Made by a program: the position numbers and the translations under genes | Assembly (NCBI GenBank): GCA_965240325.2 | Contig: OZ251249.1 | Span: 682,001 to 746,000, forward strand | Reading direction: 5' to 3' | DNA length: 64,000 nucleotides | Origin: Rebecca billardiae RCC1528 | Lineage: Eukaryota; Protista; Haptophyta | In this document: positions 2,907 through 39,019 of the stretch, in pieces | Layout of the letters: the number at the start of each line of letters is the position of its first letter | Numbering within the stretch: the first letter of the stretch is position 1 | The notes under the pieces: model-generated | Told to the model about the DNA's origin: nothing | The model's input: the letters and a program-made list of their open reading frames with translations, nothing else | The model's database searches: none

Positions 2907-3401
2907 ATGGCGGCGCGCCCGCCGCGCCGGCGGAGCTGTTGGCACGTCGTGCTCTTCTTGGCGACGTGCGGCGCGCGCGACGGCCGACGCCGTCTGATCG
3001 TGGGCGGCGAGTCGCTCTCGCCGTTCCAGCTCCCCTGGCTTCTCGTCCTCGCCGAGCGCGAGCTCAGCGCCGACGCGTATGAGATCCATTGTGGCGCTTC
3101 GCTCGTGCATCCGCGCATCGCGCTCACGTGCGCGCACTGCGTGCACAACCGCACGTCGAGCTTCAAGGTGAGCGTGCACCGGCACAACATCACGCGGCCC
3201 GCGCGCTCTGAGTCGCGCTGCTCGCGCAACATCGAGGTGCGCTCCGTGCTCGCACACCCGCGGTACAATTCGGTCACGCAAGCCAACGACATCGCGCTGA
3301 TGCTGCTCGCGCGGCCCGCGCCGTGCGCAAAGACGGTGAGGCTCGACGACGGCACGGCGCTCCGGCACGCCTTCGGCACACCCGCCGCCGGCAAGGGCCG
3401 T

Positions 3402-3433
<32 letters not shown>

Positions 3434-3916
3434 TGCGGTCGGCCGCTTCGGCTGGGTCGCCGGCTGGGGGGCCACCGACCGCACCTCTGAGCACTTTTCG
3501 GACGTGGCGATGCGCGTGCGCGTGCCCGTGCTGAGCGAGGGCGTGTGCTCGCGCGTGTACGGCCCGCTCCGCGCGCGCATCAAGGTGCGCTACTTCCCGG
3601 ACTCGATGCTCTGTGCCGGCAACGCGGGGCCCCGCTGGCAGCGGCGGCGGCAGCAGTCTGACAGCTGCGAGGGTGACTCGGGCGGCCCCCTCTTCGTCGA
3701 GGCGCCGTCGGGATCGTCCGGACCGTCCGGACGGCCCGGGCAGGCCGGGCCGAGGGGCGGGCAGCGTCGGGGTCACGGGCGGCCGCTCGGCGTGCTCCTC
3801 TACTCGGGCGGCGCCGCCGGCGCGCACGAGGCCGAAGCTGACAGTGGCGGAGCTCGCGATGCCGCTGCGGATGTCGATGACCCGACTGCGCAGGCAAAGC
3901 CACCTGGACGACGACT

Positions 3917-18820: not shown

Positions 18821-21800
18821 CTAGAATCCGAGCCGCATCCCCGGTTTACTCGGGTCGTTGGCCGGGCGCTCCGCCTCGTACATCTGCCACTCGGTGATCG
18901 AGTGCTCGGCGTACAGCCGGCCCGTGGACGCGGTGAAGCCGGCGTGCAGCTTGCCGTCCCACGCCTCCAGCCCCTGCGAGGCGCGCGCGCCGCCGTGGCA
19001 CACGACACACCGCGTGCGCGGCGCGTGCACGCAGCAGCCGCCCGAGCCAGTGAGCGCGCATGCGCCTGCCCTCGGCTCGACCCCGCCTCCGCGCCCGCCC
19101 ACGGCGGCCCACGCCGCGCGCGCGCGCGCGCACCTTGAACCAGAGGTTGAGGTCCACCGTCATCGAGAGCTTCGCCTTGTATTCGTCGTCGATGAAGACG
19201 GAGAGCGTGTGCGCGCCGTCCACGATCTTGCGCTTGTTGGCCGCGCGCTCGTCGTCGTCGTCGTCGTCCTCGTCCTGCGGCGGCGCGGGCGGCGAAGGGC
19301 GGGCGGGGGGATGGGCGGAGGGCGCACGCGCGGCGCCGTCCAGCCGCGCGCCTGCCGTCCGCCGCGGGACGAGCGGTGCTGCGAACAGGCCGCAGCGCCG
19401 TCGCGCGCGCGCGCGAGCGCTGCCGCAGGCGAGCGCCGTAACCGCCGCCGTAACCGTCGCCGTAACCGTCGCCGCCCTTGCGGGGCAGCCCCGGCGAGCG
19501 GCGGCGCGGGCGCGAGGACGGGCGGCGCGCACCTTGGAGCGCGTCGCCTTCGCGCGCTTCCGCCGCTCCTCCTCGCGCAGCTTCTCCGCGCGCGTCTGCG
19601 CGCGCCGACACAGCGGGGCGGCGCGCGCGTCGGCGCGGCGCAATTTGCGGCGGCGGCGGCGGCGGCGCGCTCAGCGGCGGTGTGCCCGCCTCCTGCCCGC
19701 GTCGCCGCCCGGCGCGCCGCGCCGGCGCGCGCCTCGGCGCGCGCGCGGGGCCGCCCGGGCGCACCTTGTTGAAGCGGCTCTTCTCGAAGACGATCCGCAC
19801 GCGGTGCTCCTTGCCAGAGGCGAGGTCGATGCCGTGGTCCTCGAGCGACACGCGCGCCTTGGTGTCGCGGGGGCCCGTGCTCACTGGGCCGACCCCGCCC
19901 TGCAGGGGGTGCGCGGCCGCGGCGGGCGGCGGGTGCGGCACGGCGCGGGCGCGTGCGCGGCGGCGCGGACGTGCGTGAGCGCACACGGCCGAGCGGCGCG
20001 TGCCCGCCGGCGCGCGCGGCGCGGGTGGAGGGTGGGTGGCCCGCTCGGCGCACGCGCGCGCGCATGCGCGAACACACGCGCGCATGCGCATGCGCACGCG
20101 CGAGCGCGCGCGCGCGCGCACCGTCTGGACGGCGACCGTGTGCATGCGGTGCTCGAGCAGGTCGTCGTCCTCGGCGTACCCGCTCCGCTGCACCGCGCCC
20201 ACGCCGTACCCCGCGCCGCCCCCGCGCCCGCCGCGCCCGCCCGGCTCGCGCCGAACCGCCTGCTGCAGCCGCGCGTCGGACAGCGGGTACGTAACGGCGT
20301 CGTCCAGCTCCGTCTCGAACTTGGGCGCCCAGAACTTCTCGGACTGCGAGGGCGGAGGAGGGGGCGCGCGCTGGGCTCAGGGCTCGGACCCCGCCCGCGG
20401 GGCCGCGCCGCGCCGCGCCGCGCGGCGTGGGTGGGCGGCTGCGCGCGCGCTCCCAAGCGCGCGCGCAGCCGTGCGCTAGCGCGCGCCAAGCGCCTTCCGC
20501 GCGCACCGGCGTGTACGGGTTCGTCATGAGCTTGCCGCTGTCGCCGCGCCGCACGTAGAAGAGGTTCCGGTAGCGCGTGTCCGAGGGCAGCTTGCACAGC
20601 AGCTTCTCGTCCTTGTCCAGGTCGAGCTTCTTGAGCGGCTCGTCCGCGTGCTGAGTCGCGCACGACGGGTGCACGGCAAAGTGGACGGCGATCGCGTTCT
20701 GGAGGTTGCCGTAGCTGCGCGCGCGGGTGTGGGCGGGGTGTGTGTGCGGGGGGCGTGGTCGGTGGCGGCGCGGCGTGGCGCGGCGCGCGGTCGTGCCGCC
20801 TAGCCCTCCCCCAGCTGGGCGCGCGCGCGGTGCGCTGCGCGCGCACACCCCATCTGCGTCCCCGAGCCGCCGATGGCGGCGGTGCGCTTCGGGTCGCGGT
20901 GGAGGACGAAGGCGAAGCCGTCCGCGCCCGGCGGCTCCGGCGCGCCGTCGTGCGCGGGCTTGGGGAGCGTGATGCGCACCCTGCTCGGCGCGGCGCGCCC
21001 ACGGCCGGCCGGTCAGCACGCAGCAGCAGCGCGCGGGGTCTTTTTTTCATCCCGCCAGCAGCGCAGCAAGCAAAAGGGGAAAGGACGCGCGCGGGGAAAA
21101 AGAAAGGCGGGAAACAGCATGGCCGCGCGCGCGCACACCTGAAGATCACCTCCAGGCCGTGCACGACGGAGACGGGGTCGCAGAACCACGCGGCGCCCGC
21201 CTGGCCCACGCCCTTGACGAGGGGCGTGAGCCGCAGCACGTTGTTCAGCACCTCGGCTTGGCCCGTCGTGTGCACGAGCGGCCGCTCCTTCGCACCCGCC
21301 ACCTTCACCTTGGCCTGCGCCGGGCCGCGGCCGCGCACCGCCCGCCGCGCGGGGGCGCGCGAGCGAGGGGGCGGCGCGTGAGCCGGGCGTGGGTGCTGCG
21401 GCCGCCGCGCGCGCACGACGCGGCACGCACCTCCACCCGCGCGCTCTCGCTCAGCGCGTCGGCCGCGCGCGCCGTCACGTCTTCGAAGAGCTTGCTGCCC
21501 CCCGCGCCGAAGCGGCGCGAGCTGAGCGCAAGGACCTGTGCGAGAGCGGTTAGGGAGGGTGAGTAGGGTGTAGGGTTAGGGTAGTCGGGTGGTAGGGTTG
21601 GGGGTAGGGCTCGGGTTCGGGTGAGATGCGTTCGCGCGTGCGGAAGTGGGCGGCGCCGACGGGCGACGGGCGCGGCGCGTGCGGCACGGGCGGCGCGCGC
21701 GCGCGGCAGGCAGGCAATCGGCCGCGCACGAATGGCCTACCCCGCGGCGCGGCGCGCCCCCGCCGCCCGAGCAACGCTGCTGCCGGGCGAGCGCGAGTGC

Positions 21801-24800
21801 ACCCGGGCCGGGCGCGGCGCCGGGCGGCCGTGCCGCCGCGCGCGCGCGTGGGCGCGCGCATCCGGGCGTCTGCGCGCGCGCGCCTTCTTTGCATAGACGA
21901 AGAGCGACGGCAGCTTGGGCAGCTTCGCCTCGCCCTTCGCGCCCACGGCGACGCTCATCTTGAGGCCCTGCCCCAGCGCAGCTGCACGCCGCAGCACGCA
22001 GCACGCAGCACGCAGCGCGCAGCGTGCGCGCCGCGGCGGGTCGGGGCGGCGTGAGCGCGTGCGCGCGTGAGCGCGGGCGGAGGCGGCGCGCCGGGCGCGC
22101 GCGCGCGCGCACACCCGCTCCGCCCGCCGGCGCGGTCACGGTGACCGGGATCGACTTGGAGAACTGGCCGCGGCCCGCCAGGTTGCGCCCGGCCAGCCTG
22201 AACTGGTACCGCCGGCCCAGCTCGAGCCTGCAGCCGCAGCCGCAGCAGCGGCAGGTCCAAGCCGCGCCGCGCGCGCGCGTGCGAGCGTGGTGGCGCGTGA
22301 GCGGGGCGCCTCAGCCGAGCGCGCGCCGGCGCGCGGCGCCACGCTACGCGGCGTGCACGCACGTGCGCTCACGCGCGCGCAAGCCCACCCGCCCGCGCAT
22401 GCACGCACAGCACACCCCACCCAAGCCCGGTCGCCGCATGCGCGCACAACGCGCGCCCGCGCGCGCCCGCAACTGCCAGCAACCGCGCGCGCCGCGCGCG
22501 CCGCGCGCGCCGCGCGCGCCCTCGCACCCGAGCGTCGCGAGGTCGAGCTCCATGGGCAGGCGCGGCAGCTCGCGGATGATCGGCGCAGACGCGGTGGCGC
22601 CGCCCGCCGCCGCCGCCGACGAGTCGTCGGGCTTGATCTGTGCACGGCGGGACGCGGCGGCGCGCGGCGCCGGAGGCCAGTCGCGGCGCGCGCGCGCGCG
22701 CGTGAGCGCAGACGGTGCGGTCGGCGCGGCGCGCGCGCGGCGCGCGCGGTCGGCGCGGCGCGCACCTCGAGGACCCACTTGCTCGCCTTGCGCTTCTCCT
22801 CCTTCTCGAGGGCCTTCGCCACGAGCTCGACGCGCAGCTGCGACGCGCCGCGCTCCTCGGGCAGCGGCGTGAGCTGCGGCGCGGGCGGCGGCGGCGGCGG
22901 CATCACAAGGTGCTGCGGTGCCTTTTTGATGAGCACCGTCTCGCCTGCGCGGATGTGGCCGTAGTGCGTGAAGAGCGCCTGCGTGGCGGTGTGCCTGCAC
23001 CAGACGGAGAGCGTGTCGAGGAACCACGCGCCCGCGCCGCCCTCGCGCCGCTCGATCCGGAGCTGCACGTTCGCCAGGTCGTAACCGACATCGAGTAACG
23101 GCTTTCCGCTCGCGTCGCGCGACACGTCGAATGTTTCGACCGTGCCGCGCTCGAAGCGGTGTGGCGCCTTGAGCTTGATCTCCTCGGTGGGCGTGCGGCC
23201 GTCGGCCCCGCCGAGCAGGCGCAGGCTCACCGTGCCGTCGAACGCCGCCTGCTCTGCGTCGCCCGTCGCCACCGCGATCCGGTACAGAGGGCACACAGGG
23301 AGTTCCGCCCAGTCGGCGCCCACCAGCGTCGGCTTGGCCGCGTCGGTCCCCTCGAAGCGCCATGCGGATTGGTCCGAGAGCGAGGTGAGCGTTGCGGACT
23401 GCAGCCGCCACTCGGGCCCGCTGGCGTCGTCGTCGTCGAGCGAGAAGGCGGCCGAGCTCAGGTCCGAGAGCGGCTCCACCGTCTTGAGCAGGAACACGTC
23501 GGTCTGCCCGGGCTTGAAGAGGCGCGGCCGCGTCGCCTTCACGCGCGCGCCCGAGTCCGCCTTCACAGAGAATCGATACTCGGGATTCTTCGACTCGGCG
23601 GAGAGCTCAAACGAGTCGTCGGCGTCGCCGCCGTGGAGGAGGTCGAGCACCGCGCTCTCGCGCGGCTCGCCGCTCTCCGTGCCGAACTCGGTGCGGAACA
23701 GCGCGAGCCACACCGGCTCCTCCGCGCCGCCCGCCGTGCCGGTCGAGACGGCGGACGCTTTGGCGCGCGTCGTCACGCGAAGCTCGTACTCGTACGTCTG
23801 TTCCTTGTCCGCGTCCGCGAGGTCGTCGGGCGTGGGCGGCAGCTCCTTCGAGAGGAGCGCGGAGACGCGCTCGTCCAGCTCGCGCACCTGCGTGCGCGGC
23901 GGCCACGAGAGAAAGGGGCGGCGCGCGCGTGGCGGCGGCGGCGGTTGGCGCGCGCGCCGAGCGCGCCCGCAAGCGCGCGCCGCGCGGCCGCGCGCGCGCG
24001 CACACGCCGCGCGCGCGGGGGCGGGCGGGCCGTCGCGGCGCGCGGCGCAGGGCGCACGGCCGCGCGCGCGTGCGCGTGCGCGCTTGCGTGCGCGCACCTC
24101 GTCCAGCACCTTCTCGATCTGCGAGAGCTGCCCCGACGTCTTGACGAGGTTGCGCCCGCGGCTGCGCGGCGTCTCACTCGGCTGCTCGGGCGCGGGCGCG
24201 GCCGTGTAACGCTCGTCGTCGCCGCGCTCTCCCCAGTCGCGCAGCTCGGCGAGGCGCAGCGAGCCCGTGGATACGACAGAGGCGGTCTGCACCGTGCGCA
24301 GCACAGGCGCGAGCGCCGCCGTCGCACTCGCGCCCGCGCCGCCGCCGCGCGCGCCGCCGCCTGCGTGCTTGGACTCGCGGTAGGCCTTCTTGTCCACCGA
24401 CGCCCAGTGCATCAGCTTGGCGCGCAGCAGCACCTGTGCGCGCGTGCGTGCGTGCGTGGGCGCGTGTGCGCGCGTGAGTGCGCGCGTGTGTGTGTGTAGG
24501 CGAGTGCGGGTACTGTGTCCGCGCACACGCGCAGCGCAAGGCAACCGCGCGGCGCAGGCTGCGGCTCGGCGCGCGCGCGGCTGCTGCGCCCAACGGCCAC
24601 ACGCAGGCAGAGGCAGCAGACGAGCCGAAGCGCGAAACAAAGGCCACAACAAAAGGGGGCGCGCGCGCGCGCACCTTGTCCATCACGTTGAGCCACTTGT
24701 GCAGCAACGGCAGCATCGCGCGCAGCGCCTCGAGCGCGCCGCGGCAGACCATCTTGGCCGTCCACAGCTTGCGGAGCGCGCCGTTGTACAGCTGCTCGCA

Positions 24801-27800
24801 GTCCTCCGCCGAGTAGACCGCGCCGCCCGACGCGGCGGCCGCCGCGGCGGCCGCCGCGGCGCGCTCCGCCGCGGCGCGCTTCTGCGCGCGCGCCGCGGCG
24901 GAGCGGCCGCGCGCGCGCGTGCTCTGCGCGCCGTATGCCACCGCCGCCGCCGCCGCCGCCTCCGGATTTTGGAAGAGCTCGGGGTAGGTTGCCTTGTAGG
25001 ATTCGCGCAGCAGCTCGTGCAGCGAGACCTCCCACCCGTCCACGAGCCGCTGCTGGATGCCCACCACCTGCAAGCACGCGCACAGCCGACCAGCCGCGGC
25101 GGGGGGCGCGCGGAACACGCAGAGCGCGCGCGCGCAGGCGGGTGTGTGCGTGGGCGCGGCCGCGGCGGGCGAGCGGCGGCCCGTCAGCCGCGCAAAGGCA
25201 CAGCAGCACAGCGCCGCGCGCGGACAGCAGCCAGCCGCCCGCAGCGGCCACACGCTCGCGCGCACGCGCGGCACTCGGCCGCTCGGCCGCGCGGCGGCGC
25301 GGCGGTGGCGTGCGGCGCGCAGGCGCGCTCGGTGCGGCGCGTGCGCGCGCGCGCGACGCTGGCGCGCGTGTGCGCGCGCACCTCTGTGACGAGGTTGAGC
25401 ATGCCCTCCTCGAACTGGTCGAGCTTCGCCTCGTTGGAGCGCTCGAGCATCGCGCGCGTCGGCGCCGCCATCGAGCCCCACGTCGCGCGCCCCGGGTCGT
25501 CCTGCCCGCCGAGGCCAAACATTGAGAACAGATCGGCGGCGCCTCGGCTCGAGCGGCGCTCGGCGGCGCCGGCGGCGCCGGCGGCGCCGGCGGCGCCGCC
25601 GTCGGCCGGGTGCGCGGGCTTTGCGGCGCTGCTGCGCGCGAGCGACTCGGCGCGCTTGACGAGCCACGCCCTGCCGAACCGCTCCATCTCGCCGAGCAGC
25701 CGCAGCTCCGCCTGCCGCTTCGCCGCGTACATCGCTTCGGTCTTGCGGCCGTCCACGCGCGACTTGACGAGCGCTAGCTGCCGCTGCAGCGCGCGCAGTG
25801 TCTGCTCCTCGACGCTCGCCGCGCGGTCGAGCTCGGAGACGCGGCGGTCGACCTCGGACTCCTGCGCGCGGGCGCACGGCGTGCGTGGGCGGCGCGCGTG
25901 AGCGGTGCCACGCCCGCGCCGCGCGCCGCGGAGCCTCGGGGCGGCCGCGCGCCCGCGCGCGCGCTCGCGCGCGATCCCGCCTGCGTCGCGCGTCCGCCGC
26001 GGCCGCCGCGTCCGCCGCGTCCGCCGCGCCGAGCGCGCGCGCACCTCCGCGCCCTCCCACGTGTACTTGAGGAAGCAGTTGCGCTCGTCGACGGCGTACG
26101 GGTCGTTGCTCGTCAGCTTCGCCAGCTCGGCCGGGTCCGTCACCGCCGCGGGCAGCTGCAGAGGCACCGGCGCGCGGTTGATGGCTGGAACAGTGACGAC
26201 AGGCGCGCGGCCGCGGCGCGCGGCCGCGGTCGCCGACGGCATCGCGCCGCCCTTCGCGACGGCGAGCATCTCGTCGTCGGAGAGCCCGGTGCGCACGTGC
26301 CCGGACGCGTCGGTCGACCACGCCACCAGCCCCGCCGCGAACGTGAGCGTGCCCACGGGGACGTGCAGTCGCGTGATGGACGGCGGAAGCAGACGAGCCA
26401 GCGCCTGCGGCCGAGCGCGCGCGCGCGGAGGCGGTGGCGGCGGTGGCGGCGGTGGCGGCGGCGCGCGGCGGTGGCCGCGCGGGTGGCGGCGGGGGCGCGG
26501 GTGAGCGTCGCCGGCCCCCGCCCGCGCAGCGCGACGGGCAGGCTCGCGCCTCGCGCGCGGGCGACTCACCGCCTGCGGATTGGCGCGTAGCTCGGTCGCG
26601 CGCGCGCGCGCCGACGCCTGCCGACGTCCGGTGCGCCGCTGTGCGTTGTGCCGCTCCGCCTCCTCCTGCGACGAGATGAGCAGCGAGTCGACGGCGGCGA
26701 CCACGAAGCTGCGCACGGCGCGCGCGGGGGCGCGGCGCGCGTGCCCGCGTGCGCTCGCAGCGTCAGCAGCCGCACACGCGCGCCGCGCTCTCACGCGCGC
26801 GCTTACGCGCGCCGCGCCGCGCCGCGCCGCGCTGTGCCGGCCGCCGCTTGGAATAAGGAGGAGGCGCGCGCGGCGGGCAGCGCGCGGCGGACGCCGCGCC
26901 GCGCGTACCCTTTCCACCCGCGCACCTGCGCGCGCGTCTCGGGCACCTCCACCACCGCCGCGGCCCCCTCCGCGCCCTGCGCCGCGCCGCTGCCGGGCGC
27001 GCCCGCAGGCCAGATCAGATCGGCGAGCGAATCGGTCGCGCCCGCGGCCTCAAACAATTCGAGTATTGGCATGTCCATGTCCTTCGCCACCACCGTGCGG
27101 TCGGCGACGGTGACCGAGCTGCGAGCGCGCGCGCGCGCGCGCGCACGGCCGCGCCAGGGGGTGAGCGCGCGTGCTCGCGCGCGCGCGCGGGCGGCGCGCG
27201 GCGAAGCGGCGGCGGCGGCGGTGCCTGCGTGCGCGCCGCGTGCGCGCGCGCGCGACCGGTGCCGCGCGCGCGCGCCGCCGGCCGCGCGGCCCGCGCGCAC
27301 CGGCTGCGCTCGCCCGTCTTGTCGACGAGCTTGACGGCGCCGTCGGCCTTGCCCTCGGCGGCCAGCAGCTCGCTCAGCCGCACCCAGCACCGCCCGATCG
27401 GGTCGCTCACCATGCCGTTGGACGCGTCTCGCGTCGGCGGCGAGAGCGCCGCGTGCAGCGCCGGCTCGAGCGCCGCGGCGCGCCGGAGCTCGCGCACGCG
27501 CTCCGCCTCGGCGGCCGCCTCGATCGAGTCGGCGGGCGGCGGGCGCCACTCCTCGCGCGCGGCCTCGAACGCCGCCGTCTCGCGCCGGTACCCCACCGCG
27601 ACGAACAGCGCCTCGCGCAGCTGCCGCTCCAAGACGTCGTTCAACTCGAGCGGCAAGTACGGCGGACCGCCAATATCGCCCGGCTGGCGGCGGTGCACCT
27701 CGAAGCGGAGCAGGCACTCCTCCGCGTGGGTGTACGCGTCGTTGTCGATCGCGAGCACCAGACGCTCGTCCCACCACACGGGCACGGCGTCCGCGGACGC

Positions 27801-30800
27801 GGCGCGCTTCTTCTTGGGCGGCGCGGCCGCGGCGGCGGCGGCGCCGCCCGCCGCCGCCGCGCCCGCCGGCTTGGCGGCGCCGCCATCCTTGCCGCCGGCC
27901 GCCGCCGCGCCCGCCGCGGGCTTCTGGCCGCTGCTCGCGGCGGCGGCGCCGTTGGCAGCCGCGGCGGCACCACCGCCGCCTCCGCCTGCCCCGGCCGCGG
28001 GCGCGTCCGCCACGGTGGGCGCCAGCTTCTTGAGGTTGCCCACGATGGTCGGCAGCCGCGCCTGCCGAGCGGCGCGCGGCGCGCGGCGCGGGCGGGCGGG
28101 CGGGCGGGCGGGCGGGATGGGATGGTCAGTTGAGGGCAGGGGCGCGCGCACGCTTGCGCGCGACAGCACGGCCGCACACACTCGGGTCGGCGCGCCCGGC
28201 GGCGCGCGACCCCCTCGCTCTCCGCGCGCGCGCCCCGAACCCCAACCCTAACCCCAACCCTACCACCCTAACCCTACCCTAACCCTCAGCCCCAAGCCTC
28301 AGGCCCGCACCTTGGCGCCGCCCGCCTCGCGCGAGCCCGGCTTCGTCACGAAGAGCTCCTCCTCCGCGGTGCCGAGCGCGGCGTACGCGACGGTGAGGAA
28401 CACGTCGTCCAGCTCGAGCGCCATGCCCAGCCGCTTGGCGAGCGTCGCGAGCTCGACGATCAGGATGCGCTGCATGCCGCCGCGGTCGCCGAGCGCGTCG
28501 GACCGCGCCGCGCCGCCGCCCGCCGCGGCCGCGCCGAGCCCGCCGTCGGCGAGCTTGCCGCCCAGTGTGAGCCGCTTGTGCTTCGGGCTCCCGCGCGGCG
28601 AGCCGACGCCGTCGTGCGCCGCCGACCCGCCGGCGCCGCCGTCGGCGCCGCCGCCCGCCGCGCCGCTGCTGTGCGTCATGCGGTAGGCCGCCTCGCGCGC
28701 GCGTCCCTCCGCCTGGGCTCGCGCGGCGGCGGCGCGGCGCGCGCGGCGGCGCGGCGCGGCGCGCGGCGGTGACGCGCGTAAGTGCCGCGCGGCGCGGCGG
28801 GTGTTGCGGCGGCGGCGGCGGCGGCCATCAGCGTCGCGCGCGCGCAGCGCACGCCCCCGCGCGCGCGCCGCGCCGCGCCGCCGCACCTCCGTCAGTACGC
28901 GGACCAGCACCGGCGTGCCTTTGTCGGCGACGCCGCGCGCGCGCGCGCCCGAGCCAGCGTAGCCGCGCGCGGTGAGCAGCGGCGCGGCGTCGCCGAGCGC
29001 CGCGCCCTGCGCGTCCGTGAGCAGCTCGACGAGCGTGGCGCGCACCGCGTCCGCCCGCCGCTGCGCGAGCTCCGTCAGCTGGTCCACCGAGAGCGCCGCC
29101 GTGCCCGCCGCCGCGTCGGGGTGGGCGGTCAGCTCAATACTCACACGAAGCAACGGTGAGCGCGCCAGTAGCAATTCGGCGTTCACGGCCGCGAGAGCGC
29201 GCGCCGCCGAGCCGAGGAGGATGGAGGTGGCGGTGGGCGTGGCGAACTCGGCGCCCGCCTTTGCAAAGTGCACGCCGCGCTTGAGCCGCAGCTGCATCCG
29301 CGCGAGGTCCAGCTCGACGTCCGGCGCCGTGTCGGCGAGCCGTGCCTCCGCCGCCGGTTGGAGCTGGGATGCGGCGGGCGGCGGCGGGAAGGGCGCGGCG
29401 CGCGGACGCGAGCGACGAGCGCGGGTGGAGGTGCGCGGCGTGAGCGCGCGAGGCGCGAGCGCGCGGCCGCGGGCAGGGCAGCGCGCGCGCGTCGACGGCA
29501 CGGCGCGCAAGCCCAGCGCGCGCCGCGCGCGCCCGACGCGCGCACGCACGCGCACGCGCCACCGCCGCGGCCCGCGCCGCGCGCGCACGGCCGCGCGCGC
29601 GCGCACCCTCTGCAGAAATGCGGCATACTCGCTGCGGTCCGTGCCCGCGCTCGGCGCGCCGAGCACGCCGCCGCGCGGGCGCGTGACGGTCGGCAGCCGC
29701 GCGACCAGCCTGGGGTAGATCTCGTGCGGCGGCAGCTCGCCCAGCCACATGACGAACGAGCCCGACGCGACGACGAGTGGGTGGCGCACGCGCGCGCGCG
29801 TGAACTCGCCCGGCCGCTTCGCGCCGCCCGGCCCGCCGCCGCGCCGCCGCTCGCCCATCTCGAAGTCGACGCGCGGCTGCGCGGCCGCGACCAGCCGATA
29901 CAGCTTGCGCAGCGTGCGCACCTTGCGCGCGCCCTCGATCGCCGTGCCGCCGCCGCTGCCGCCGCCGCCACCCTCGGCCTCATCCGCGGCGGCGGCGGCG
30001 GCGCCGCCCTCGCCACCGCCGCCGCCGCGCGGCGAGGGCGGCGCCGCGCCGCCGCCCTCGCCGCCGCCGCGCCGCTTCTGCACGCCGGCCGCCTGCCGCC
30101 ACGACGCGCGCGCCTCGTCGTGGTCGAGCTGCCGTCCGTACGCGGTCACGTCCTCGTCCTCGGCCAGCGCGAGGTACGCGTCGCACCTGCACCGCGCCGC
30201 GCAGCACAGCAAAGCGCAGCACCGCGCAGCACAGCGCAGCACAGCACAGCACAGCACAGCACAGCGCAGCGCAGCACAGCACAGCGCAGCACAGCACAGC
30301 ACAGAGCGCAGCACAGCGCAGCACAGCGCAGCACCGCGCACGCGTACACAGATAGCCACGCGAGCACACGGCGCGCACGGGGCGGGAGCGGTGGATGGGC
30401 GGGCGGGCGGGCGCGCCGGCCGGAGGGCGCCGCGGAGGGGGGAGGCGTGTGGTTGGGTCAGCGGCAGGGGCGGCGCGCGAGGGGCGGCGCGCTCGCGCGA
30501 GCACGCGCGCGCGCGCGGCGCGGCACTCCGCCGCGCGGCGCGCACGCGGCGGCGGCAGCAGCAGCGGCGGCGGCGCGCGCACGCGGCGGCGGCCGCAGCG
30601 GCAGCGGCGGTGTCGCGCGCACCACTCCTCGTCGTCCAGGTCCTGCGGGTCGCGCACGTGCCGCCGCGCCGCCTCCGCCGCCATGTAGTCCAGCAGCGCG
30701 TACCGCTGCGCCCACAGCTCCGGCAGCTTGAGCGCGAGCGTGAGCGCGCGCTCGGAGAGCGGTTCGCACGACGGCTCGCTCCACTCAGCGCGGCCCGTGT

Positions 30801-33800
30801 CCGGCGCGTACTCGAAGACGGCGCGCGCGTCGTACGCCGCGGCCCACTCGCCGACGATCACCTCGCCCTGCCGCTCACCGAGGAACGACGCCGCGGGCGG
30901 GAAGAAGCCAGGCTTGACGGGGGGCGTGTACCGTTTGGTCCACGAGAGCTGCGTGCCGCGCGCGTCCGCCGCCTTGCCCTCGATGGTGAACGCGCCCACC
31001 TCGTCCTTGCCCGAGCCCGAGAGCACCACGCCCGCCAGCCCCTGCTCCGAGAAGATGATTTGCATCGAGGAGAGCTGCCGAGACTTCTCTGCTCGGCGGG
31101 AGGGCGGGCGGGCGGGCGGGGAGGCGGAAGGGAGGGCGGGGGTTGGCGCGTGTGCGCGCGCCGCGCACACGCGCGGTGCGCTGTGCGCGCGCCGCGCCGC
31201 GCCCACCCGTCCCCCGCGCGCCGCGCGCCGCGCGAGGCCAAGGAGGGCGGCGCACGCAGCGCGCCGCGCCGCGCGGGGTTGCGCGTGCCGTGTTCAAAGT
31301 AGCCCGTCCACAGCCCCGAGATGCGCGTGGTCTCGGGCACGGCGTTGGTCACCTCGTGCAGCAGTCTGTCCTTTCCCTTGCGCCGCAGCGCCACGCCCGC
31401 CTGGATCCGCCCGCCGTCGACGGAGCCGGGCAGCTTGAGGTCGAACCAGCCGAGGTTGCCCTCGTGCAGCTTTGCAAAGTCGGCGAGCTTGAGCCGCACC
31501 TCGCCCAGCGCCGCGCCGAGCGGGTTGGACGGCTTGACGTCGACGATCGAGATTGCAATCTCCCGCCGGCGCACCTCGTCGCCGTCAAGCCCGTGCCACT
31601 CGGGCGAGCGGTACCCCCACGCGGCGTGGCCAGTCTTGGTGTGCACCGCGGCGGTGGTGACGGCGTACCCGCCCACCTTGGCGCGCGCGCGCACGTTCAG
31701 CTCGCGCTTGCTGCCTGCCGCGGCGCGCGCGCCGGCGCGGCCGGGGCGGGCGGGCGAGGCGGCGCGCTGAGCACGCGCGGGCGCGCGCCACGCGGGCACT
31801 CGAGGCTGCCCCCCTCTCCCACCCACGCGCGGCGCGCTCAACGTGCGCGCGCGCGCGCGCGGACGCGCGCGCGCCGCACCGAACAGCCCGCCGCCGCCCT
31901 GCTTCCACTTGACGTCCACCGCGGCGAGCGTGATTCGCATCTCCCAACCGTCCTCCTCGTCCGACTCGTCCGAGCCGTACCCGCCGCCGCCGAACAGACC
32001 GCCGCCGCCGCCGCCGCCGGAGCTCGAGTGACTCTCGCGGTCGGCGGCCGCGCCGGACACGCCGCGCGCGCCGGACGTGCGCGTGGCGCCCCGCCCTCCG
32101 AGCTTGAGCCCGAAGAGCGTCCTGCGCCCGCGCGCGCCGCCCGCGCCTGAAGTACGCGGCACGCCGAGCGCCTCCAGCGCATCCTCGTCCAGCTCGGGCA
32201 GCTCGTACGGGACGCACGTCGGGCCGAGCAGCCGCGCCTTGATCCCGTTGAGCGACGAGTAGAGCTCCTCCGCCGAGCGGCACGCGACGTACTTTTGCGT
32301 CGCGAGCAGTTTCTGCGGGGCGCGTGCGCGCGCGCGGGTGCGCGCGCGTGCGCCGTGCCAGGCGCCGCGAGGGCGGTGCGGCCGGCGCGGGGGGCGCGCG
32401 CGGTTAGCGCGCGCGCGCGCGCGCGCGCGCACGGCAGGGCCGGAGCGCCCGCGCCGCCACGCGCGCCGGCCGCCACGCCGCGCGGCCCGCGGCCCGCCCC
32501 CCCCGCGCGCACCTTGCGCCGGTGCACCTCCCGCATCGGCAGCAGCCGCTGCAGCCGCTGCAGCAGCAGGAGTTCCTCTGAGAGGGAGACTGAGCGCGCG
32601 CCCTCGTCCAGGTCTGCGTAGTAGTCAAGGGTGGTAAGCATCTGCTGCTGCAGCAGGTCGCGCAGCCACAGCATCGTCTCGAGCCGCTGCAGCTGCCGCG
32701 TGAGCGCCTTGCACTCGTCCGCAGGCGCCGCGGCGAACTTGGCGAGCGCGGTGAACTCGCCAATCAGCATGGCCGCCGGCTGCACGTTGAGCGTGGCGGT
32801 CGAGATCAGGATGGAGGGCGACGCGACGGGCGCGGCCACCTGCCCTGCGAGCTGCGTCAGCTCGAGCGTCATCGACTCGAGCGAGCTGTGGTCCAGGTTG
32901 AGGCACGCCGTGCACAGCTCGGCGAACGCGCCGCGCTCGACCGCGCCCTCGCCCGCCTGGATGAAGGCGGAGAGGGTGAGCTCGAACGCGCGCGACGAGA
33001 GAAAGACGGCGCCAAACGGGACGAGGGTGAGACGCTCCAGGTCGAGGAAGGCGGGCGGCGCGCCGTGCGCCGCGCCGAGCATCGCGTGCCACAGCTGCAG
33101 CAGCACGCCCAGCCGCCCGGCCGAGCGGAGGAACATCTGCTCCAGCATCGCGCGCCCCTGCTCCGCAGTGAGCCGGCCGAGCGGCGCCCAGCGGAGCGCG
33201 ACCAGCTCTGCGATCACCTCCGGGTTGAACGAGCCGTGCACCAGCGCGTACTCCTTGATCACCTCCAGCGTGGCGGCGAGGCTGAGCGGCCCGCCGCCGC
33301 CGGCGCCACCAGCGCCGCCGCCCTTCGCGCCGCCGCCGAGCGCCCAGCTGAGACCGCCGCCGCCGCCCCCACCGCCCGGGTTCGCGGCCGCCTCCTGCCC
33401 CGCCGCCGCGGCCGCGCCATCGACTCCCGCCTTCACCGGCCGCGTGGTCGGCACAGCCGCGTCCTCCGCCTCGCGGGCGTACTCGTCGCGCTTGCGCTGC
33501 GGCGGCGCGGCGCGGCGCGGGGCGGGGGGCACGCGGCGCGGGGCGGGGCGCGCGGCGGTGAGGGCGCAGCCGAGCGGTCGGGCGCGCGCGCGCGCCTGCA
33601 CACGGGCGTGCGCCGGTGGCTGGCGCGTGGCGGCGGCGGCGGCGGTGTGCTGCGCCGCCGCTGCAGCCGGGCGTGCGGCGGCCCGGACCGGAGCCGCCTC
33701 CCGGCAAACCGCCTCCCCCGCCCCGCGCGCGCGCCACCCCCACCACCCTAACCCTCAGACACAGCCCCGCCCCCACGCCCACACGAAGTGGCGACGCGCG

Positions 33801-35290
33801 CACGCCCTCGGCCGCGCGCCCGCGCGGCGCGCGGGGCGGAGGGACGACGCGTTCTCTCGATCCATCCCACTCCCCATGGCATGCCTGCCCAGGGGCCGCG
33901 CGCTGTCCAACCCGTGTGCGTTGCGTTGCCACGCGCGCCGTGTGCCACGCACCTCCTGGTGCGCCTGCTCCTCCTTGAAGGCGCGCAGCAGATCCAGCAG
34001 CTCCCGCTTGGGCGCGAGAGACCCCTCCTTCTTCGCGCCCTGCGCCGCCGTGTGCGCCTGCGCCGCCCGGCGCTGCGCGTGCGCGTCCGCCACGCCGCGC
34101 GGCAGCTTGCGCTTGCGGCCTGCGTGCCGCGCGAGCGGGCGCGCCGCGCGGCGCCGCGGAGGGCGCGGCGGCGGGGTGGGTGCGGCGAGGGGTGGCGCGG
34201 GTTTGGATCGGGTGTGCCAGTCCGCGGGCGGCGGCGGCGCGCGCACGCGCGAGAGCGCGCGCCGCCGAAGCGCGAGCCACGCCGCGCGGCGGCGGCACGC
34301 GCGCACCCGTGTCCGCCTGCGCGACGCGCGCGCGGTGGCGCGCCGACACGCGCCAGAGGCCCTCCTCCCGCCCCTGCCGCGACCGCGCGCGGTGCGTGTG
34401 CGTGCGTGCGTGCGTGTGAGTGGGTGCGTCCGTGTGGCGGAGGGTGCGCGCGCGCGGCACGCGCGGCTGAGAGGCACGGCGGGCTCGGCCGCGCGCGAGG
34501 CCGCGCGCGCTGGCGCCGGGGCACGGCAGTGCCACCGGGCTGCACACAGCGAGCGCCGCGCAACGCCCGCCGCGCCCGCCGCGCCGCGCGCAACGCGCGC
34601 GCCGCGCCGGCCGCGCGCCGCGCGCGGCCGCCGCCCTCTCACCTGCTTGAGCGCGTGCTCAGCGCCGTGCTTGATCCGGCCCTCGACGAGCGCCATCTCC
34701 TCGTTGAGCTTCGCCTTGAGCTGCTCCTCGCGCGAGCGGCCCAGCTCGCCCACCCTGCCCACCGCAGTATCCTCCGAGCCGGGCGGCGCCGGAGGGATCG
34801 CGGTGCGGGCGAACCGAATCCACCCGTCCCGGTGTTCAAGTGACAGGAGGGCCGGGTCGAGCTCTCGCGCGCGCGCGAGGTTGAGCGCCTGCTCGGTGGC
34901 CTCGGCGACGCGCCCCGAGCGCAGCTGCCCACCCGCGCCGCTCGACGCGTCGCTCCCCAGCTCGGCGAGGTTCAGGCCGACGTCAGCCGAGCCGCCGATC
35001 AGAACGCTCGGCTGATCGGCCGCGCGCGAGCCGGGCGCGCGCGCGTACGAGCTGGCGGCGGCGGCAGCCTGGAGCGCGGCCTTCTGCGCGGCGGTGCGCG
35101 AGCCCTCGCCCTCGCGCCGCCCGTCCTTGCCCTCCTTCCCGCCGCCGACCGCGCCGGCGCCGCCGCCCTTGTCGGGTGCCGCCTTGGGCTTGCGGCCGCC
35201 GCTGCTCGGCCGCGGCTTGCGCTCGCCCGCGTTGATCGTCTCGTGCGCCTTGCGCAGGTTGTCGTCGGCGTCCTTCAGCGCGCCGGGCAT
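18821..35290 (-). CDS. Giant 30-exon multidomain protein (~3,368 aa): helical N-terminus, C2, beta-barrel, OmpA-like, C2, coiled coil, PLAT x2, FN3, L-type (legume) lectin
   Basis: Exons: 34643-35290, 34307-34373, 33953-34119, 32513-33496, 31880-32312, 31289-31714, 30623-31088, 29607-30186, 28887-29363, 28311-28712, 27301-28061, 26909-27118, 26570-26708, 26045-26404, 25382-25861, 24675-25067, 24098-24433, 22766-23887, 22528-22637, 22115-22227, 21884-21981, 21431-21535, 21139-21314, 20849-20980, 20507-20714, 20122-20343, 19765-19899, 19533-19595, 19134-19274, 18821-18973. All 29 junctions are phase-compatible (27 GT-AG, 2 GC-AG) and the total is 10,107 nt. Motifs: lectin LRLTP..QAGAAW, GADGFAFVL, GFTASTG; PLAT YRIAVATGD..FERGTVETF..WFLD; FN3 GLELGRRYQFRLAGRNLAGRG. 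Confidence 0.85.
21548..21622. repeat. Degenerate telomere-like (TTAGGG/GTAGGG)n tract in an intron
   Basis: GGTTAGGGAGGGTGAGTAGGGTGTAGGGTTAGGGTAG... inside intron 21536-21883. Confidence 0.85.
28234..28287. repeat. Degenerate telomere-like (CCCTAA)n tract in an intron
   Basis: CCCCAACCCTAACCCCAACCCTACCACCCTAACCCTACCCTAACCCT inside intron 28062-28310. Confidence 0.88.
30199..30333. repeat. (GCACA/GCGCA)n pentanucleotide tandem repeat in intron 30187-30622
   Basis: Read directly. Confidence 0.93.
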
Positions 35291-35750
35291 CGTGCGAGCC
35301 GCGTCGGCGCGCGCGCACGCGCGCTGGGGGCGCTGGCGAGAGCTCGGGACGCCAACGCGAGCGCGAAGCAGCCGCAGCCGCCACCGCTCAAATGCGCACA
35401 CCGGCCTGCGCTCGGCTGCTGCCGCCCGGTGCTGCCACTGCGCACCGCCCCCGCCCGGGCGAGTGTGCGGCGGCCACCGCATTTTTTTCCGGCGCGTCAG
35501 CTTTCAGCTTTGATGCTGCTCGCGAATTTCGATCACCCCGGACCGCCGCCGCTAACTTGAAACTAACTAACGGCCAGCCACGATCTAAGCATGGCGGCTC
35601 GCACGTGCCACATGGGCAACACGCCTCACGCTCGTGTCGAACGCGCGCTCGCCTCCATGCACGCATACAGCAAGAACGCCGCCCAGCCCGCGGAATCAAT
35701 AAGAATAACCCTCGCCGTCCGGACCGCCGCGCGATCTGAATCATATCGCG

Positions 35751-38700
35751 TCACATCATCTGCGACGCATCCTTGTCGTCCTTCACCTTGAGGTGCTCCG
35801 CGCGCACGTCGCAGCCCCACACGACGGCGGCGCCGAGCACGGCGGCGCCGAGCGCGCAGCCCAGCGCGATCCACCACGCGCCCCCGCTCGCGTCGACGAG
35901 CACGCCCAGGGCGCACGCGCCGCTCACCCCGACACACAGCAGCGAGTGACCCACGTGCCGCGCTCGGCTGCAGCCGGGGAACCAGCCCTGGCCACCGGGG
36001 GAGCGGGCCCCTAGTGTGCCCACGTACGCCAGGTGCGCGAGGGCTGGGAGGCCCGTCGTCGCGTCGCGGTCGTACCACGGGCAGCCGTCGTGGCACAGCG
36101 GCAGCAGCAGCACGCACACGGCGACGACGACCAGCAGCCAACCGACCGCGCTCTGCGCGGGGCAAAGCGCGCGGCGCGGGCGGTGCGCGGCGCGGTGCGC
36201 GGCGCGGCGCGGCGCGCGGGCAGCGCGCGGCGCGCGGCCGAGGATGGCGCACGGGGGCGGGGCGGCACGGCGCGCGGCTCAGCGGCAGGGCGGTCAATGG
36301 GGACACGGGGGGCACGCTCGTGGTGGCGCCGGCACCGGCGGCGGCGCACGGCGCGCGCGAGCTTGAGCGCGCGCGCGCGCGCGCGCCGGCCGCGCGCGCG
36401 GGCGGCGCGCACCCCTGTGGTCTGGTGCTGTCTCGTGTAGACCGCAGCGGCGCCGATGCCGGCGGCGAGCACGCCGAGCGTCGCCGCCGCGCCGCACACC
36501 ACGCACGCCATGTACGACGCGCGGAAGTGCACCCGCCTGTGCAGGTGCGTCGGCGAGCCGATGAACGCGCACCGGAAGCGGCAGAGATTCGTCACCGTGA
36601 GTGCGGCGACGAACGCGCACCCGAGGGCCCACAGGCAAACGCCGAGCCGAAACCGCCCAAGCATCGCGGCGTCCGCCGGCACGCCGAGCGCCGCGAGCAC
36701 GAACGGCGGCGCGGACGCGAGCCGGCGCGACGCGGGGGGCTCGCCCGCCATCGGCGCGTACGTGCTCACGGCCAGTGACGAGACGACGAGCGTGAGCGGG
36801 AAGGGAGTCCGGGAGTCCACACTGAACGTCGGGGGCTCCAGCAGGACTCTGCGCCCCAGCATGGCCGCCAGCAGGGGGTTACGGGGTAGGGTTGGGGTGT
36901 AGGGTTAGGGGGTAGGGGGCGCGGGGCGGGAGCCCGAGCCGGCGGGCGGCGGGCACCGACGCTGCGCGCGCCGGCACGGCGGCACGCTGCCCACCCGCCA
37001 CACGCAAAGCCGACAGCGCATGCGCGCGCGCGCGCGAACCGCGAACGCGCGCGCGCGCGCGCATGCGCACGCGCACGCGCACCGGTCAAGAGCGACGTCA
37101 GTCTGCGCCGCCTCGCCCGTGTCGCCAGATGCGCTGGTGCGCGTCGCTGCGCGCGCGCACGCGAGCACGGAGCCGTGGCACGCGGGCACGGGGGAGGCGC
37201 GCGACGGCGTGAGCGCGAGAGCACGGCGCGCAGGCGTGCACCCTGAGCGCCCCGCGCCGCGCCCCGCCGCGCCCCGCCGCGCCGCGCCGCGCCGCGCCGC
37301 GCCGCGCCGCGCCGCGCGCACTGCCGTGGGAGCGGTAGTCGCGCCGGTGCGTGTGGCTCAGCAGCAGCCACGTCGCCGCGAACGCCGGCGCGCGGTACCC
37401 GTACGGGTAGCCCACCGCCGACCGCTGGAAGTGCGACGCCGGCGCCAGGAACGAACCGGACGGCCCATCGCGCACGCCGCGGCCGGCGGCATATGCGCCC
37501 GAGCCGCGGACGTAGTGCGCACTGCTCGGGTCGTGCCAGTACGCGTGGCCGGAGGCCCCCGCGTGGCCGCCGGCGGAGCCGCCGCGCGAGGTGTGCGTGC
37601 TGCTGCCGTGCGAGCCCGAGAAGCGGCCGCCGCTGCTGCTGCCGCCGCTGAAGCCTCCTTTGAGCAGCAAGCGCGCAGTGGGCGGCGCGCGCTGCTGCTG
37701 CTGCTGCTGCGGCGGCTGCTGCTGCGGCTGCCGCTGCGGCTGCTGCTGCGGCTGCTGTGGCTGTGGCTGCGAGCTCGCTCGCGCCGCCGCGCCTACGGGG
37801 GCATCGGCGCGGTGCGCCGCCGCCGCCGGCAGCAGCTGCCGCCGCTGCCGCCGCCGCGTGACCGCGGCGCCAGCGTCCAGCGCCGAGATTGCCGAGATGG
37901 TTCGCGGCACGAGGGTGCCGCCCTCCGCGTCCGTAAGCGACCGGTCGAGCGTGACGCCCGCGCCGGTGCTCACGTACAGGACGAGCGCGTACGGCCGGCC
38001 CGGGCGCAGCTGCGCGTCCGCCGCGTGGATGACCACCGTCTGCGCCGCGCCCGTCGCGTCCGCCGCGGGGCAGAGCGTGCCCGGACCATCGAAGCGCCCG
38101 GCCCACTCGTGGCAGAAGCACTCGGCGCCACCGCCGCCGCCAGCGTCGACAGCGCCACCGTCCGCGGCGGCGGCGGCGGCGCCGCTGCCGCTCGCCGTGC
38201 CGTTCACGCCCGCGCCCGTCGCATTCGCGCACTCGCGGTGCGCGCAGCAGCTCGCCAGCTCCCACATCGCCCCGGACTCTGCGGGGCGGTTCGCCTCCTG
38301 CACGGTCTTGCCCACGCCGATGAGGACGAGGGCGACCAACAGGACGAGCAGGGAGCACGGGAAGGAGCGCGCCGCCCACGCGAGGTCCGCGCACGGCCCG
38401 TGCGCCGGTGCGCGCGCCGGCCTCTCCGCCGCCGCGCCGCGCTCCGCCCACGAGCGCATGTCCTCCGAGGGCGTGGGCGAGCGCACGCGCGCGCCGACCG
38501 AGCCCGCGGCGGCGGCGTACGGCGGCGGGGGCGGCTCGGGAGTCGAAGGGTGGTTGGCGTGCTCGACGTGCTCGAGCGCAATGTCCAGAGTCGTGCGCCG
38601 CTCGCCCGGGCCGGGAGGCGACGCCTGCCACGAGGGGCGCCGCATCGCCTCGGCCGCCTCGGCGTCGGCACGCAAGGATTGCTCATCAGCCGACGGGCGC

Positions 38701-38861
38701 CATGTGCCGACATGGCTGCCGTCGACCGGATTGTCGTACGAGCCTATGCTCGCGCGCTCGCCGGCGCGATCGACGTCGCCATGGCCCTCGCCGCGCGCGA
38801 GGTACGCCTGGAGGCGCTGCCGATGTGGACTGGCGTCCGCGCCGGCGGGGGCTCCCGTCAT
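35751..38861 (-). CDS. Multi-pass membrane protein of unknown function; 4 exons (37322-38861, 37083-37146, 36413-36848, 35751-36152); ~813 aa
   Basis: Phase-compatible GT-AG junctions. One N-terminal TM, a Gly/Ser-rich LKGGFSGG segment, polyQ/P and about five C-terminal hydrophobic helices. Confidence 0.72.
36875..36920. repeat. Degenerate telomere-like tract in intron 36849-37082
   Basis: GGGGTTACGGGGTAGGGTTGGGGTGTAGGGTTAGGGGGTAGGGGG. Confidence 0.8.
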
Positions 38862-39019
38862 CGCAGTCGATGGTCGTCGGGCTTTTCGCGGCCCCCGCGA
38901 TCGGGGCGGTGCCGCTCAGGCGATCCAGACCTGATCTCCAGATCGTACAAATATTGACACTGCGCCAGAAGGGGGGGGGGTTGCTCAGCCGGGCAGCCGG
39001 GCAGCACCTTCACTTCAAT

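Follow-up and report, generated by a model that had tools for sequence, protein, structure and literature searches.

Several described kinds of protein resemble, in modules or in layout, the product of the gene reported here, which lies on the minus strand at positions 18821-35290 of a 64,000-nucleotide (nt) stretch of DNA (hereafter, the window) from the haptophyte Rebecca billardiae RCC1528 (contig OZ251249.1, positions 682,001 to 746,000). LOXHD1-like multi-PLAT proteins resemble its product in being giant and soluble, and the PLAT domains of the two are ~30% identical (E 5e-26 to 1e-10). However, the similarity is confined to the PLAT domains: LOXHD1-like proteins carry 10-18 tandem PLAT repeats and lack the other modules, whereas our gene has two PLAT domains. 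Some protist multi-PLAT proteins are fused to doublecortin or EML domains. Two proteins (P0025 and P0038) that were considered as orthologs of similar length were rejected, as they proved to be LOXHD1-like, with 15-18 PLAT repeats.

Known L-type lectins (the plant legume lectins, ERGIC-53/VIP36, and the bacterial protein of PDB entry 7elv) are matched at the C-terminus of our protein by two strands, GADGFAFVL and GFTASTG...W, which fall where the profile expects them. The known members, however, are secreted or luminal, whereas here the domain closes a protein that lacks both a signal peptide and a transmembrane segment, is interrupted by charged insertions and, on inspection, appears not to keep the Glu and Asp ligands of the AVEFDT strand. 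Bacterial OmpA, MotB, and Pal (PF00691) share with an exon in the middle of the gene the motif layout F..g.a.l / ..I.l.gH.. / L(S)xxRAxxV / GyG. In contrast to those proteins, our domain occupies a single exon of a spliced eukaryotic gene, belongs to a family within this genome, and scores below the Pfam gathering threshold. Ferlins, extended synaptotagmins, and other multiple-C2 proteins follow a similar concept, with several sandwiches of lipid-binding type on one long protein, but our protein has no match to PF00168, no transmembrane anchor, and no SMP or FerA/DysF domain, and falls outside that group. Finally, the C-terminal order of coiled coil, FN3-like module, and concanavalin-like sandwich is one that we take to recall the TRIM C-I layout (coiled coil, COS, FN3, SPRY), although RING and B-box are missing and the terminal sandwich matches L-type lectins rather than SPRY.

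The locus holds one gene, whose 30 exons code for a protein of ~3,400 residues (Table 1). From N- to C-terminus, its modules are a disordered start, a helical domain, a C2-like sandwich, a beta-rich module, the OmpA-like domain, a second C2-like sandwich, a helical spacer, two PLAT domains, an FN3-like module, and the L-type-lectin-like domain. An earlier note on this DNA had claimed 30 exons that splice in phase into one open reading frame; our own splice-aware model arrived at the same exon count and at both of the same end coordinates. The giant length that it gave also stood, but the exact figure did not: our model has 3,410 residues, ~40 more than the ~3,370 claimed, and the difference lies in low-complexity boundaries.

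That these exons form one gene is supported by a second locus in the same assembly, which we found by single-exon searches (C11:2966589-2977841; hereafter, the paralog). It consists of a stop-free frame of 3,751 codons in which the GC content of third codon positions (GC3) is continuously ~0.98. The paralog is essentially single-exon, with some introns apparently read through near its 3' end (residues ~3317-3690). In local blastp, run exon by exon, it matched 16 of the 30 exons in strictly increasing order, from exon 1 (amino acids (aa) 196-220, a weak match) to exon 30 (aa 3711-3737), with identities of 30-67%; the strongest block reached E 9e-15. Exons 4 and 5 have contiguous counterparts in the paralog, which keeps the order of the modules in one uninterrupted frame, the position of intron 7 included, and this is a strong argument against a fusion artefact.

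Further support came from a relative. The only close matches of the PLAT exon (exon 18) in a library of 1.84 billion proteins were two fragments, whose contigs (L002-L005; Logan SRR30872635 and SRR30872636, ENA ERZ4290861; 71% GC) are collinear with exons 14-20. The relative's protein is ~50% identical to ours, rising to 50-65% in the domains. The contigs lack an intron at four junctions (14/15, 15/16, 18/19, and 19/20) and shift frame elsewhere, which suggests introns at those other places; the intronless or frame-broken places are L002:827-1018, L002:1597-1604, and L004:283-383. Since the relative lacks four introns, and yet has frame breaks elsewhere, intron positions appear to turn over fast in this lineage. 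The contigs are closer to our gene than to the paralog and are thus orthologs of our gene, from which it follows that the gene duplication predates the split of the species. Exon 18 matches a single locus in its own genome, namely its own. The family is small and appears lineage-restricted: this genome has two members, which are old paralogs, and the relative has an ortholog. A third candidate, at C11:108115, was rejected, its match to exon 7 being Ala-rich and spurious. The protein encoded around it (L008:919-3453, C11:107533-110067) has many QELANxAWAFA repeats, and its C-terminal part presumably resembles FAST-kinase-like/RAP repeat proteins.

Table 1. The gene and its modules, in window positions; CDS, coding sequence
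Feature	Position	Strand	Remarks
Whole gene	18821..35290	-	30 exons; CDS of 10,233 nt, 3,410 aa; ATG at 35290, stop TAG at 18821-18823
Exon 1	34643..35290	-	Basic, Gly-rich, disordered N-terminus, then a short helical or coiled-coil stretch (from the translation)
Conserved alpha-helical signature domain	32190..33274	-	Exon 4 residues 75-328 and start of exon 5; one intron inside
C2-like beta-sandwich no. 1	31368..31961	-	End of exon 5 and most of exon 6, spanning intron 5; C2-type pattern
Beta-rich 'barrel' module and helical tail	30625..31086	-	Exon 7; GxWxG ... GxGxDxxGxF motif
OmpA/MotB-like domain	28887..29363	-	Exon 9, 159 codons; one symmetric exon, in phase 0 at both ends
C2-like beta-sandwich no. 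2	27303..28475	-	End of exon 10 and exon 11, spanning intron 10; long internal insertion
Helical/low-complexity spacer	24098..27118	-	Exons 12-17; probably coiled-coil, judged from the translations
Two PLAT/LH2 domains, then start of the FN3-like module	22766..23887	-	Exon 18; Pfam; best stretch 22970-23284
FN3-like module	22115..22900	-	End of exon 18 and exons 19-20
L-type (legume) lectin-like domain	18821..21314	-	Exons 23-30; charged insertions, split over eight exons

The window as a whole is 61-80% GC and the gene region 72-80% GC; at such values, stop-free frames of great length are present in all six frames, and open frames by themselves are therefore uninformative. Sliding codon-position analysis was more telling: on the minus strand there are blocks with a GC3 of 0.93-1.00 (~0.95), with ~0.7 at first positions (GC1) and ~0.5 at second positions (GC2), separated by aperiodic stretches of 85-92% GC, and the gene is flanked by aperiodic spacers of lower GC (35780-35420 and 18800-18600). 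Pfam matched the PLAT domain in the minus-strand frame. A reading of the plus strand was rejected, as its frames gave no Pfam match and have a GC1 lower than GC2. The locus gave no impression of human, viral, or toxin-like sequence.

The gene model was built by splice-aware dynamic programming, using codon log-odds, open-frame and phase constraints, and weight matrices for donors and acceptors that had been trained on this locus. It was then curated by hand at three places, guided by strong unused donors and junk-like translations (sites inspected: donors 24675 and 20122, acceptors 24433 and 19899). When checked for frame and stops, the curated CDS was in phase throughout, with one stop, at its end. 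An in-frame stop lies upstream of the ATG, at 35506. The 29 introns are 116-456 nt long and 80-92% GC; 28 are GT-AG and one is GC-AG, nearly all begin with GTGCGCGC and end with CAG, and all 29 have consensus ends. We considered whether they might be introners and rejected the idea, as the 29 introns have no common sequence family beyond CG-rich low complexity. The GC-AG intron (21536-21883 on the minus strand; 348 nt, donor aagGCGCGCGC at 21883) is partly of lower GC, and the join that it makes between exons 21 and 22 is the least certain one in the 3' half of the gene.

The earlier note had not recognised the architecture, and our searches agree, insofar as neither they nor the literature yielded a match; the depth of that statement is mostly the depth of the search with the PLAT exon, exon 18 being the exon that was run against the whole 1.84-billion-protein library. 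No full-length homolog and no protein of the same architecture was found there; the exon had 77 PLAT-protein matches, and what was returned was multi-PLAT proteins and the two ortholog fragments only. Exons 4, 7, and 9 gave blanks as protein queries, which say little, given that the length window of the search excludes full-length kin. Scans of Joint Genome Institute (JGI) metagenomes with the PLAT region and with an alignment of the helical domain found no relatives, and sequence searches of the PDB with exons 6, 7, 9, and 24 found nothing meaningful. The collections searched hold few protist genomes. The literature search was blank as well, whether for this architecture, for algal OmpA-like domains, or for 7ELV. 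Within this limited search depth, the protein is a new combination of known modules.

Domains were searched exon by exon, and the surest assignment is that of the PLAT domains. The claim of two of them is borne out by Pfam, which found two stretches in exon 18 (PF01477, 42 bits, E 1.8e-10); with a gathering score of 23 bits, they belong to the family. The exon also scored 29.2 bits, above the cut-off, in a six-frame profile scan of its own genome. The module that follows is FN3-like by its pattern, and the assignment is weak. Exon 20 matched fn3 (PF00041) with 14.3 bits (E 0.049) over profile positions 56-83 of 84, and the paralog has a similar match at the homologous place (13.5 bits, E 0.084). 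Thus, the FN3-like pattern that had been claimed is there, but the Pfam gathering score of 25 bits is not reached. The region is contiguous and intronless in the relative's contigs L003 and L004, and no fn3 match was found in the relative's contiguous version (P0008).

An L-type-lectin-like domain at the C-terminus, as claimed earlier, is supported by two exons. Exon 24 matched Lectin_L-type_dom (PF18483) at E 3.7e-3 over profile positions 64-88, and exon 30 matched Lectin_legB (PF00139) at E 1.4e-3 over positions 210-242. Their scores are 17.6 and 18.6 bits, against a gathering score of 26.3 bits for PF00139, and the two stretches are collinear on the profile; the top PDB matches of exon 30 were legume lectins or ERGIC-53 throughout. 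The lectin exons are 51-67% identical to the lectin of the paralog, which scored 33.2 bits, above the Pfam cut-off, and matched a PDB 'legume lectin' (7elv_E) at 5.4e-6; the paralog was the sole locus detected when the genome was scanned with PF00139. To judge from motif inspection, and from an alignment of the paralog to the PDB legume lectin, the sugar-contacting Asp of GADGFAFVL and the Gly-rich loop are retained. In contrast, the metal-binding strand, AVEFDT in legume lectins, reads AVHFAV here, apparently without its Glu and Asp ligands, and AVQ in the paralog, followed by an apparent read-through intron. Motif inspection revealed no N...D...H metal loop in the domain. The canonical metal ligands of a lectin thus look absent.

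Exon 9 is supported as OmpA-like, without being a certified member of PF00691: it scored 19.5 bits (E 1.3e-3), below the gathering score of 27.2 bits. Among its 100 nearest named ESM-Atlas clusters, 99 are bacterial OmpA families, with a top score of 0.92. When aligned, it is 27-35% identical to six other copies in the genome, found at C24 (L013:1498-1950), C32 (L014:1501-1944), and C27:400336-402913 (L015/L016/L018), the last with four tandem copies in one open frame; further loci match weakly. Three of the six sister copies matched Pfam OmpA, at 3.1e-6, 1.1e-4, and 1.7e-4 (one with 27.9 bits, two with 22-23 bits), so that the domain claimed by the earlier note reaches Pfam significance in its sisters. 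The OmpA-like domain is a recurrent, shuffled module in this genome, with at least seven copies; the earlier note mentions neither this recurrence nor the paralog. All seven copies in the alignment keep the Arg-Ala of LSxxRA, the Arg being one of the peptidoglycan contacts of such domains. At the other contact, the Asp of GHTD, they vary, with AHPD in exon 9 and GHTK and GHTA in the best-conserved sister copies. An AlphaFold2 (AF2) run on the single sequence returned an all-helix model with a predicted local distance difference test (pLDDT) score of 62, which is unusable.

The paralog has no counterpart of this domain, as only ~50 residues lie between the conserved blocks that flank it. Because the exon is symmetric and in phase 0, is missing from the paralog, and carries a domain type that recurs in the genome, the simplest reading is that it is a mobile, exon-borne piece that would have been inserted into the gene as a later addition.

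The remaining modules are less readily named. The two C2-like regions were compared by hhalign with a C2 profile built from 11 bona fide C2 domains of this genome. The first gave a P of 3.3e-3 over 92 columns with full-length topology; the second is collinear with aa 1551-1605 of the paralog, and its counterpart there gave a P of 1.9e-4 (probability 48%), while three controls gave 0.2-0.7. We regard both regions as C2-like, with low confidence; the weak hhalign signal agrees with the earlier claim of two such domains, but Pfam detection does not. Of the 57 loci in the genome that match PF00168, none is our gene or the paralog, and Pfam gave no match to a C2-clan family in either.

The helical signature domain is 37-38% identical to aa 517-800 of the paralog (E 9e-15) and has no Pfam match. 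An AF2 model of its paralog counterpart, made from a three-row alignment, had a pLDDT of 47 and is unusable, and its leads in ESM-Atlas scored low (0.82-0.87), below the level deemed meaningful. Exon 7 is collinear with aa 1039-1081 and 1236-1310 of the paralog (E 2e-7), and no match to its beta-rich module was found in Pfam or in PDB sequences. Both the paralog (aa 1907-2259) and the relative's contig L002 contain blocks collinear with the spacer of exons 12-17. No signal peptide was seen in the translation of exon 1, and no window of 19 residues reaches a Kyte-Doolittle value of 1.6 in any exon; the paralog is likewise without a transmembrane-like window. The protein is thus predicted to be soluble, in keeping with the earlier note, which had seen neither a signal peptide nor a transmembrane helix; the N-terminus is basic and disordered.

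What such a protein might do has to be read from its modules, and we tentatively favour a cytoplasmic, membrane-docking tether or scaffold that carries ligand-binding modules. The PLAT and C2-like sandwiches would dock it on a membrane surface, possibly under the control of Ca2+, and the helical middle would serve as a spacer or an oligomerisation rod. At the C-terminus, the FN3-like module and the lectin-like sandwich would bind a ligand, either protein or glycan, as might the OmpA-like module in mid-protein, which would have joined later by exon insertion.

Several points weigh against this reading. Neither C2-like region, in our gene or in the paralog, gave any Pfam match to C2 up to E 5-10, and Pfam did not detect PLAT in the paralog. 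Exon 2 (34466-34307) is dubious, with a THTH-type translation, exon 5 may hold one further split, and some low-complexity boundaries are unsure. The difference in the OmpA exon may as well reflect a loss in the paralog as a gain in our gene. Finally, PLAT, C2, FN3, and concanavalin-like sandwiches also act as protein-protein modules, and for this reason membrane docking is a textbook default.

If the beta-sandwiches are instead connectors between proteins, the product could be a structural part of the flagellar or cytoskeletal apparatus, which we consider rather unlikely. The best PLAT matches are giant multi-PLAT proteins, some with microtubule-associated doublecortin or an EML beta-propeller, and the long, helical, coiled-coil-like middle would suit a structural role. 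The genome encodes radial-spoke proteins, including a radial spoke head, so that the alga builds a motile flagellum; among the low-scoring ESM-Atlas leads for the helical domain are clusters associated with EF-hands and with axonemal dynein light chain. However, those scores are under the level deemed meaningful, the PLAT matches hold at the domain level only, and no known axonemal or centriolar family was matched in Pfam. A different proposal, put forward in the earlier note, is a cytosolic sensor for exposed glycans, bacterial or luminal, that would dock on phagosomes or vesicles and recognise its targets by means of the lectin and the OmpA-like domain, the latter being of the peptidoglycan-binding type. 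The two domains do coexist beside PLAT and C2-like modules, the Asp of GADGFAFVL and the Gly-rich loop are kept, and the Arg of the OmpA LSxxRA is invariant. We found no direct support for it, however. The reading is weakened because the metal ligands of the lectin look absent (AVHFAV here, AVQ in the paralog, no visible N...D...H loop) and the GHTD Asp of the OmpA-like domain is not uniformly retained, being replaced in the best-conserved copies; moreover, the paralog works without the OmpA module, and nothing points to phagotrophy in the alga. We think such a sensor quite unlikely. The alga has 59 matches to light-harvesting complex (LHC) proteins and is thus photosynthetic.

FN3 and L-type lectin domains are mostly extracellular or luminal, and the 5' end of our model rests on composition alone, so one might suppose that a signal-peptide exon was missed and that the modules act outside the cell, in a secreted or surface adhesion protein. 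Nevertheless, the paralog too starts with a basic, non-hydrophobic sequence straight after a low-GC spacer, neither protein has a hydrophobic segment, and Cys makes up only 0.5% of residues, which would be unusual in a large extracellular protein; the coding stretch upstream stops near 35751 and is followed by a 460-nt spacer of lower GC. Such a protein is very improbable. Less probable still is a model that has run two or more adjacent genes together, or a pseudogene whose frames are open because of ~78% GC. Long stop-free stretches do occur in all six frames at this composition, 12 introns out of 29 have lengths divisible by three, some of them stop-free in frame, and intron 7 (436 nt) holds a lower-GC, spacer-like stretch. 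Against this, GC3 periodicity is strong, frame-specific, and confined to the exons, every intron has consensus ends, the paralog has the same modules in the same order and runs without interruption across the position of intron 7, and the ortholog contigs conserve the protein.

If the architecture is as we read it, it joins sandwiches of lipid-binding type with an L-type lectin and an OmpA-like domain in a soluble giant, which would be new; L-type lectin and OmpA-like domains are otherwise extracellular, luminal, or periplasmic. A bolder version, to which we give little credence, is that a bacterial peptidoglycan-binding OmpA fold has become an exon-shuffled cytosolic module which, together with the lectin on a PLAT/C2 scaffold, would detect bacterial wall fragments or exposed luminal glycans. 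Such an intracellular detector, were it real, would be an architecture for innate sensing in a eukaryote to which nothing described so far corresponds. The paralog pair, in which only our gene has the OmpA exon, is a natural experiment on the role of an OmpA-like domain in a eukaryotic cytoplasm, and on the spread of domains by exon insertion where intron positions differ sharply between relatives. For now, its product is one of many orphan giant protist proteins. It also illustrates that giant genes at >75% GC can be modelled without RNA data and cross-validated through paralogs and differences in intron position.

Two smaller observations concern the locus itself. The upstream neighbour, at 35754-38915 on the minus strand, has strong GC3 periodicity and a stop near 35751, and matched no Pfam family save for a weak, low-complexity, TFIIA-like match (E 3.5e-3); ~460 nt of 55-68% GC separate it from our gene. 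Within the gene, a stop-free frame of 852 codons (28302-30857 on the minus strand) runs through exons 8, 9, and 10 and the introns that separate them, whose lengths of 243 and 174 nt are divisible by three, so that retaining either intron, or skipping the OmpA exon, would leave the reading frame open.

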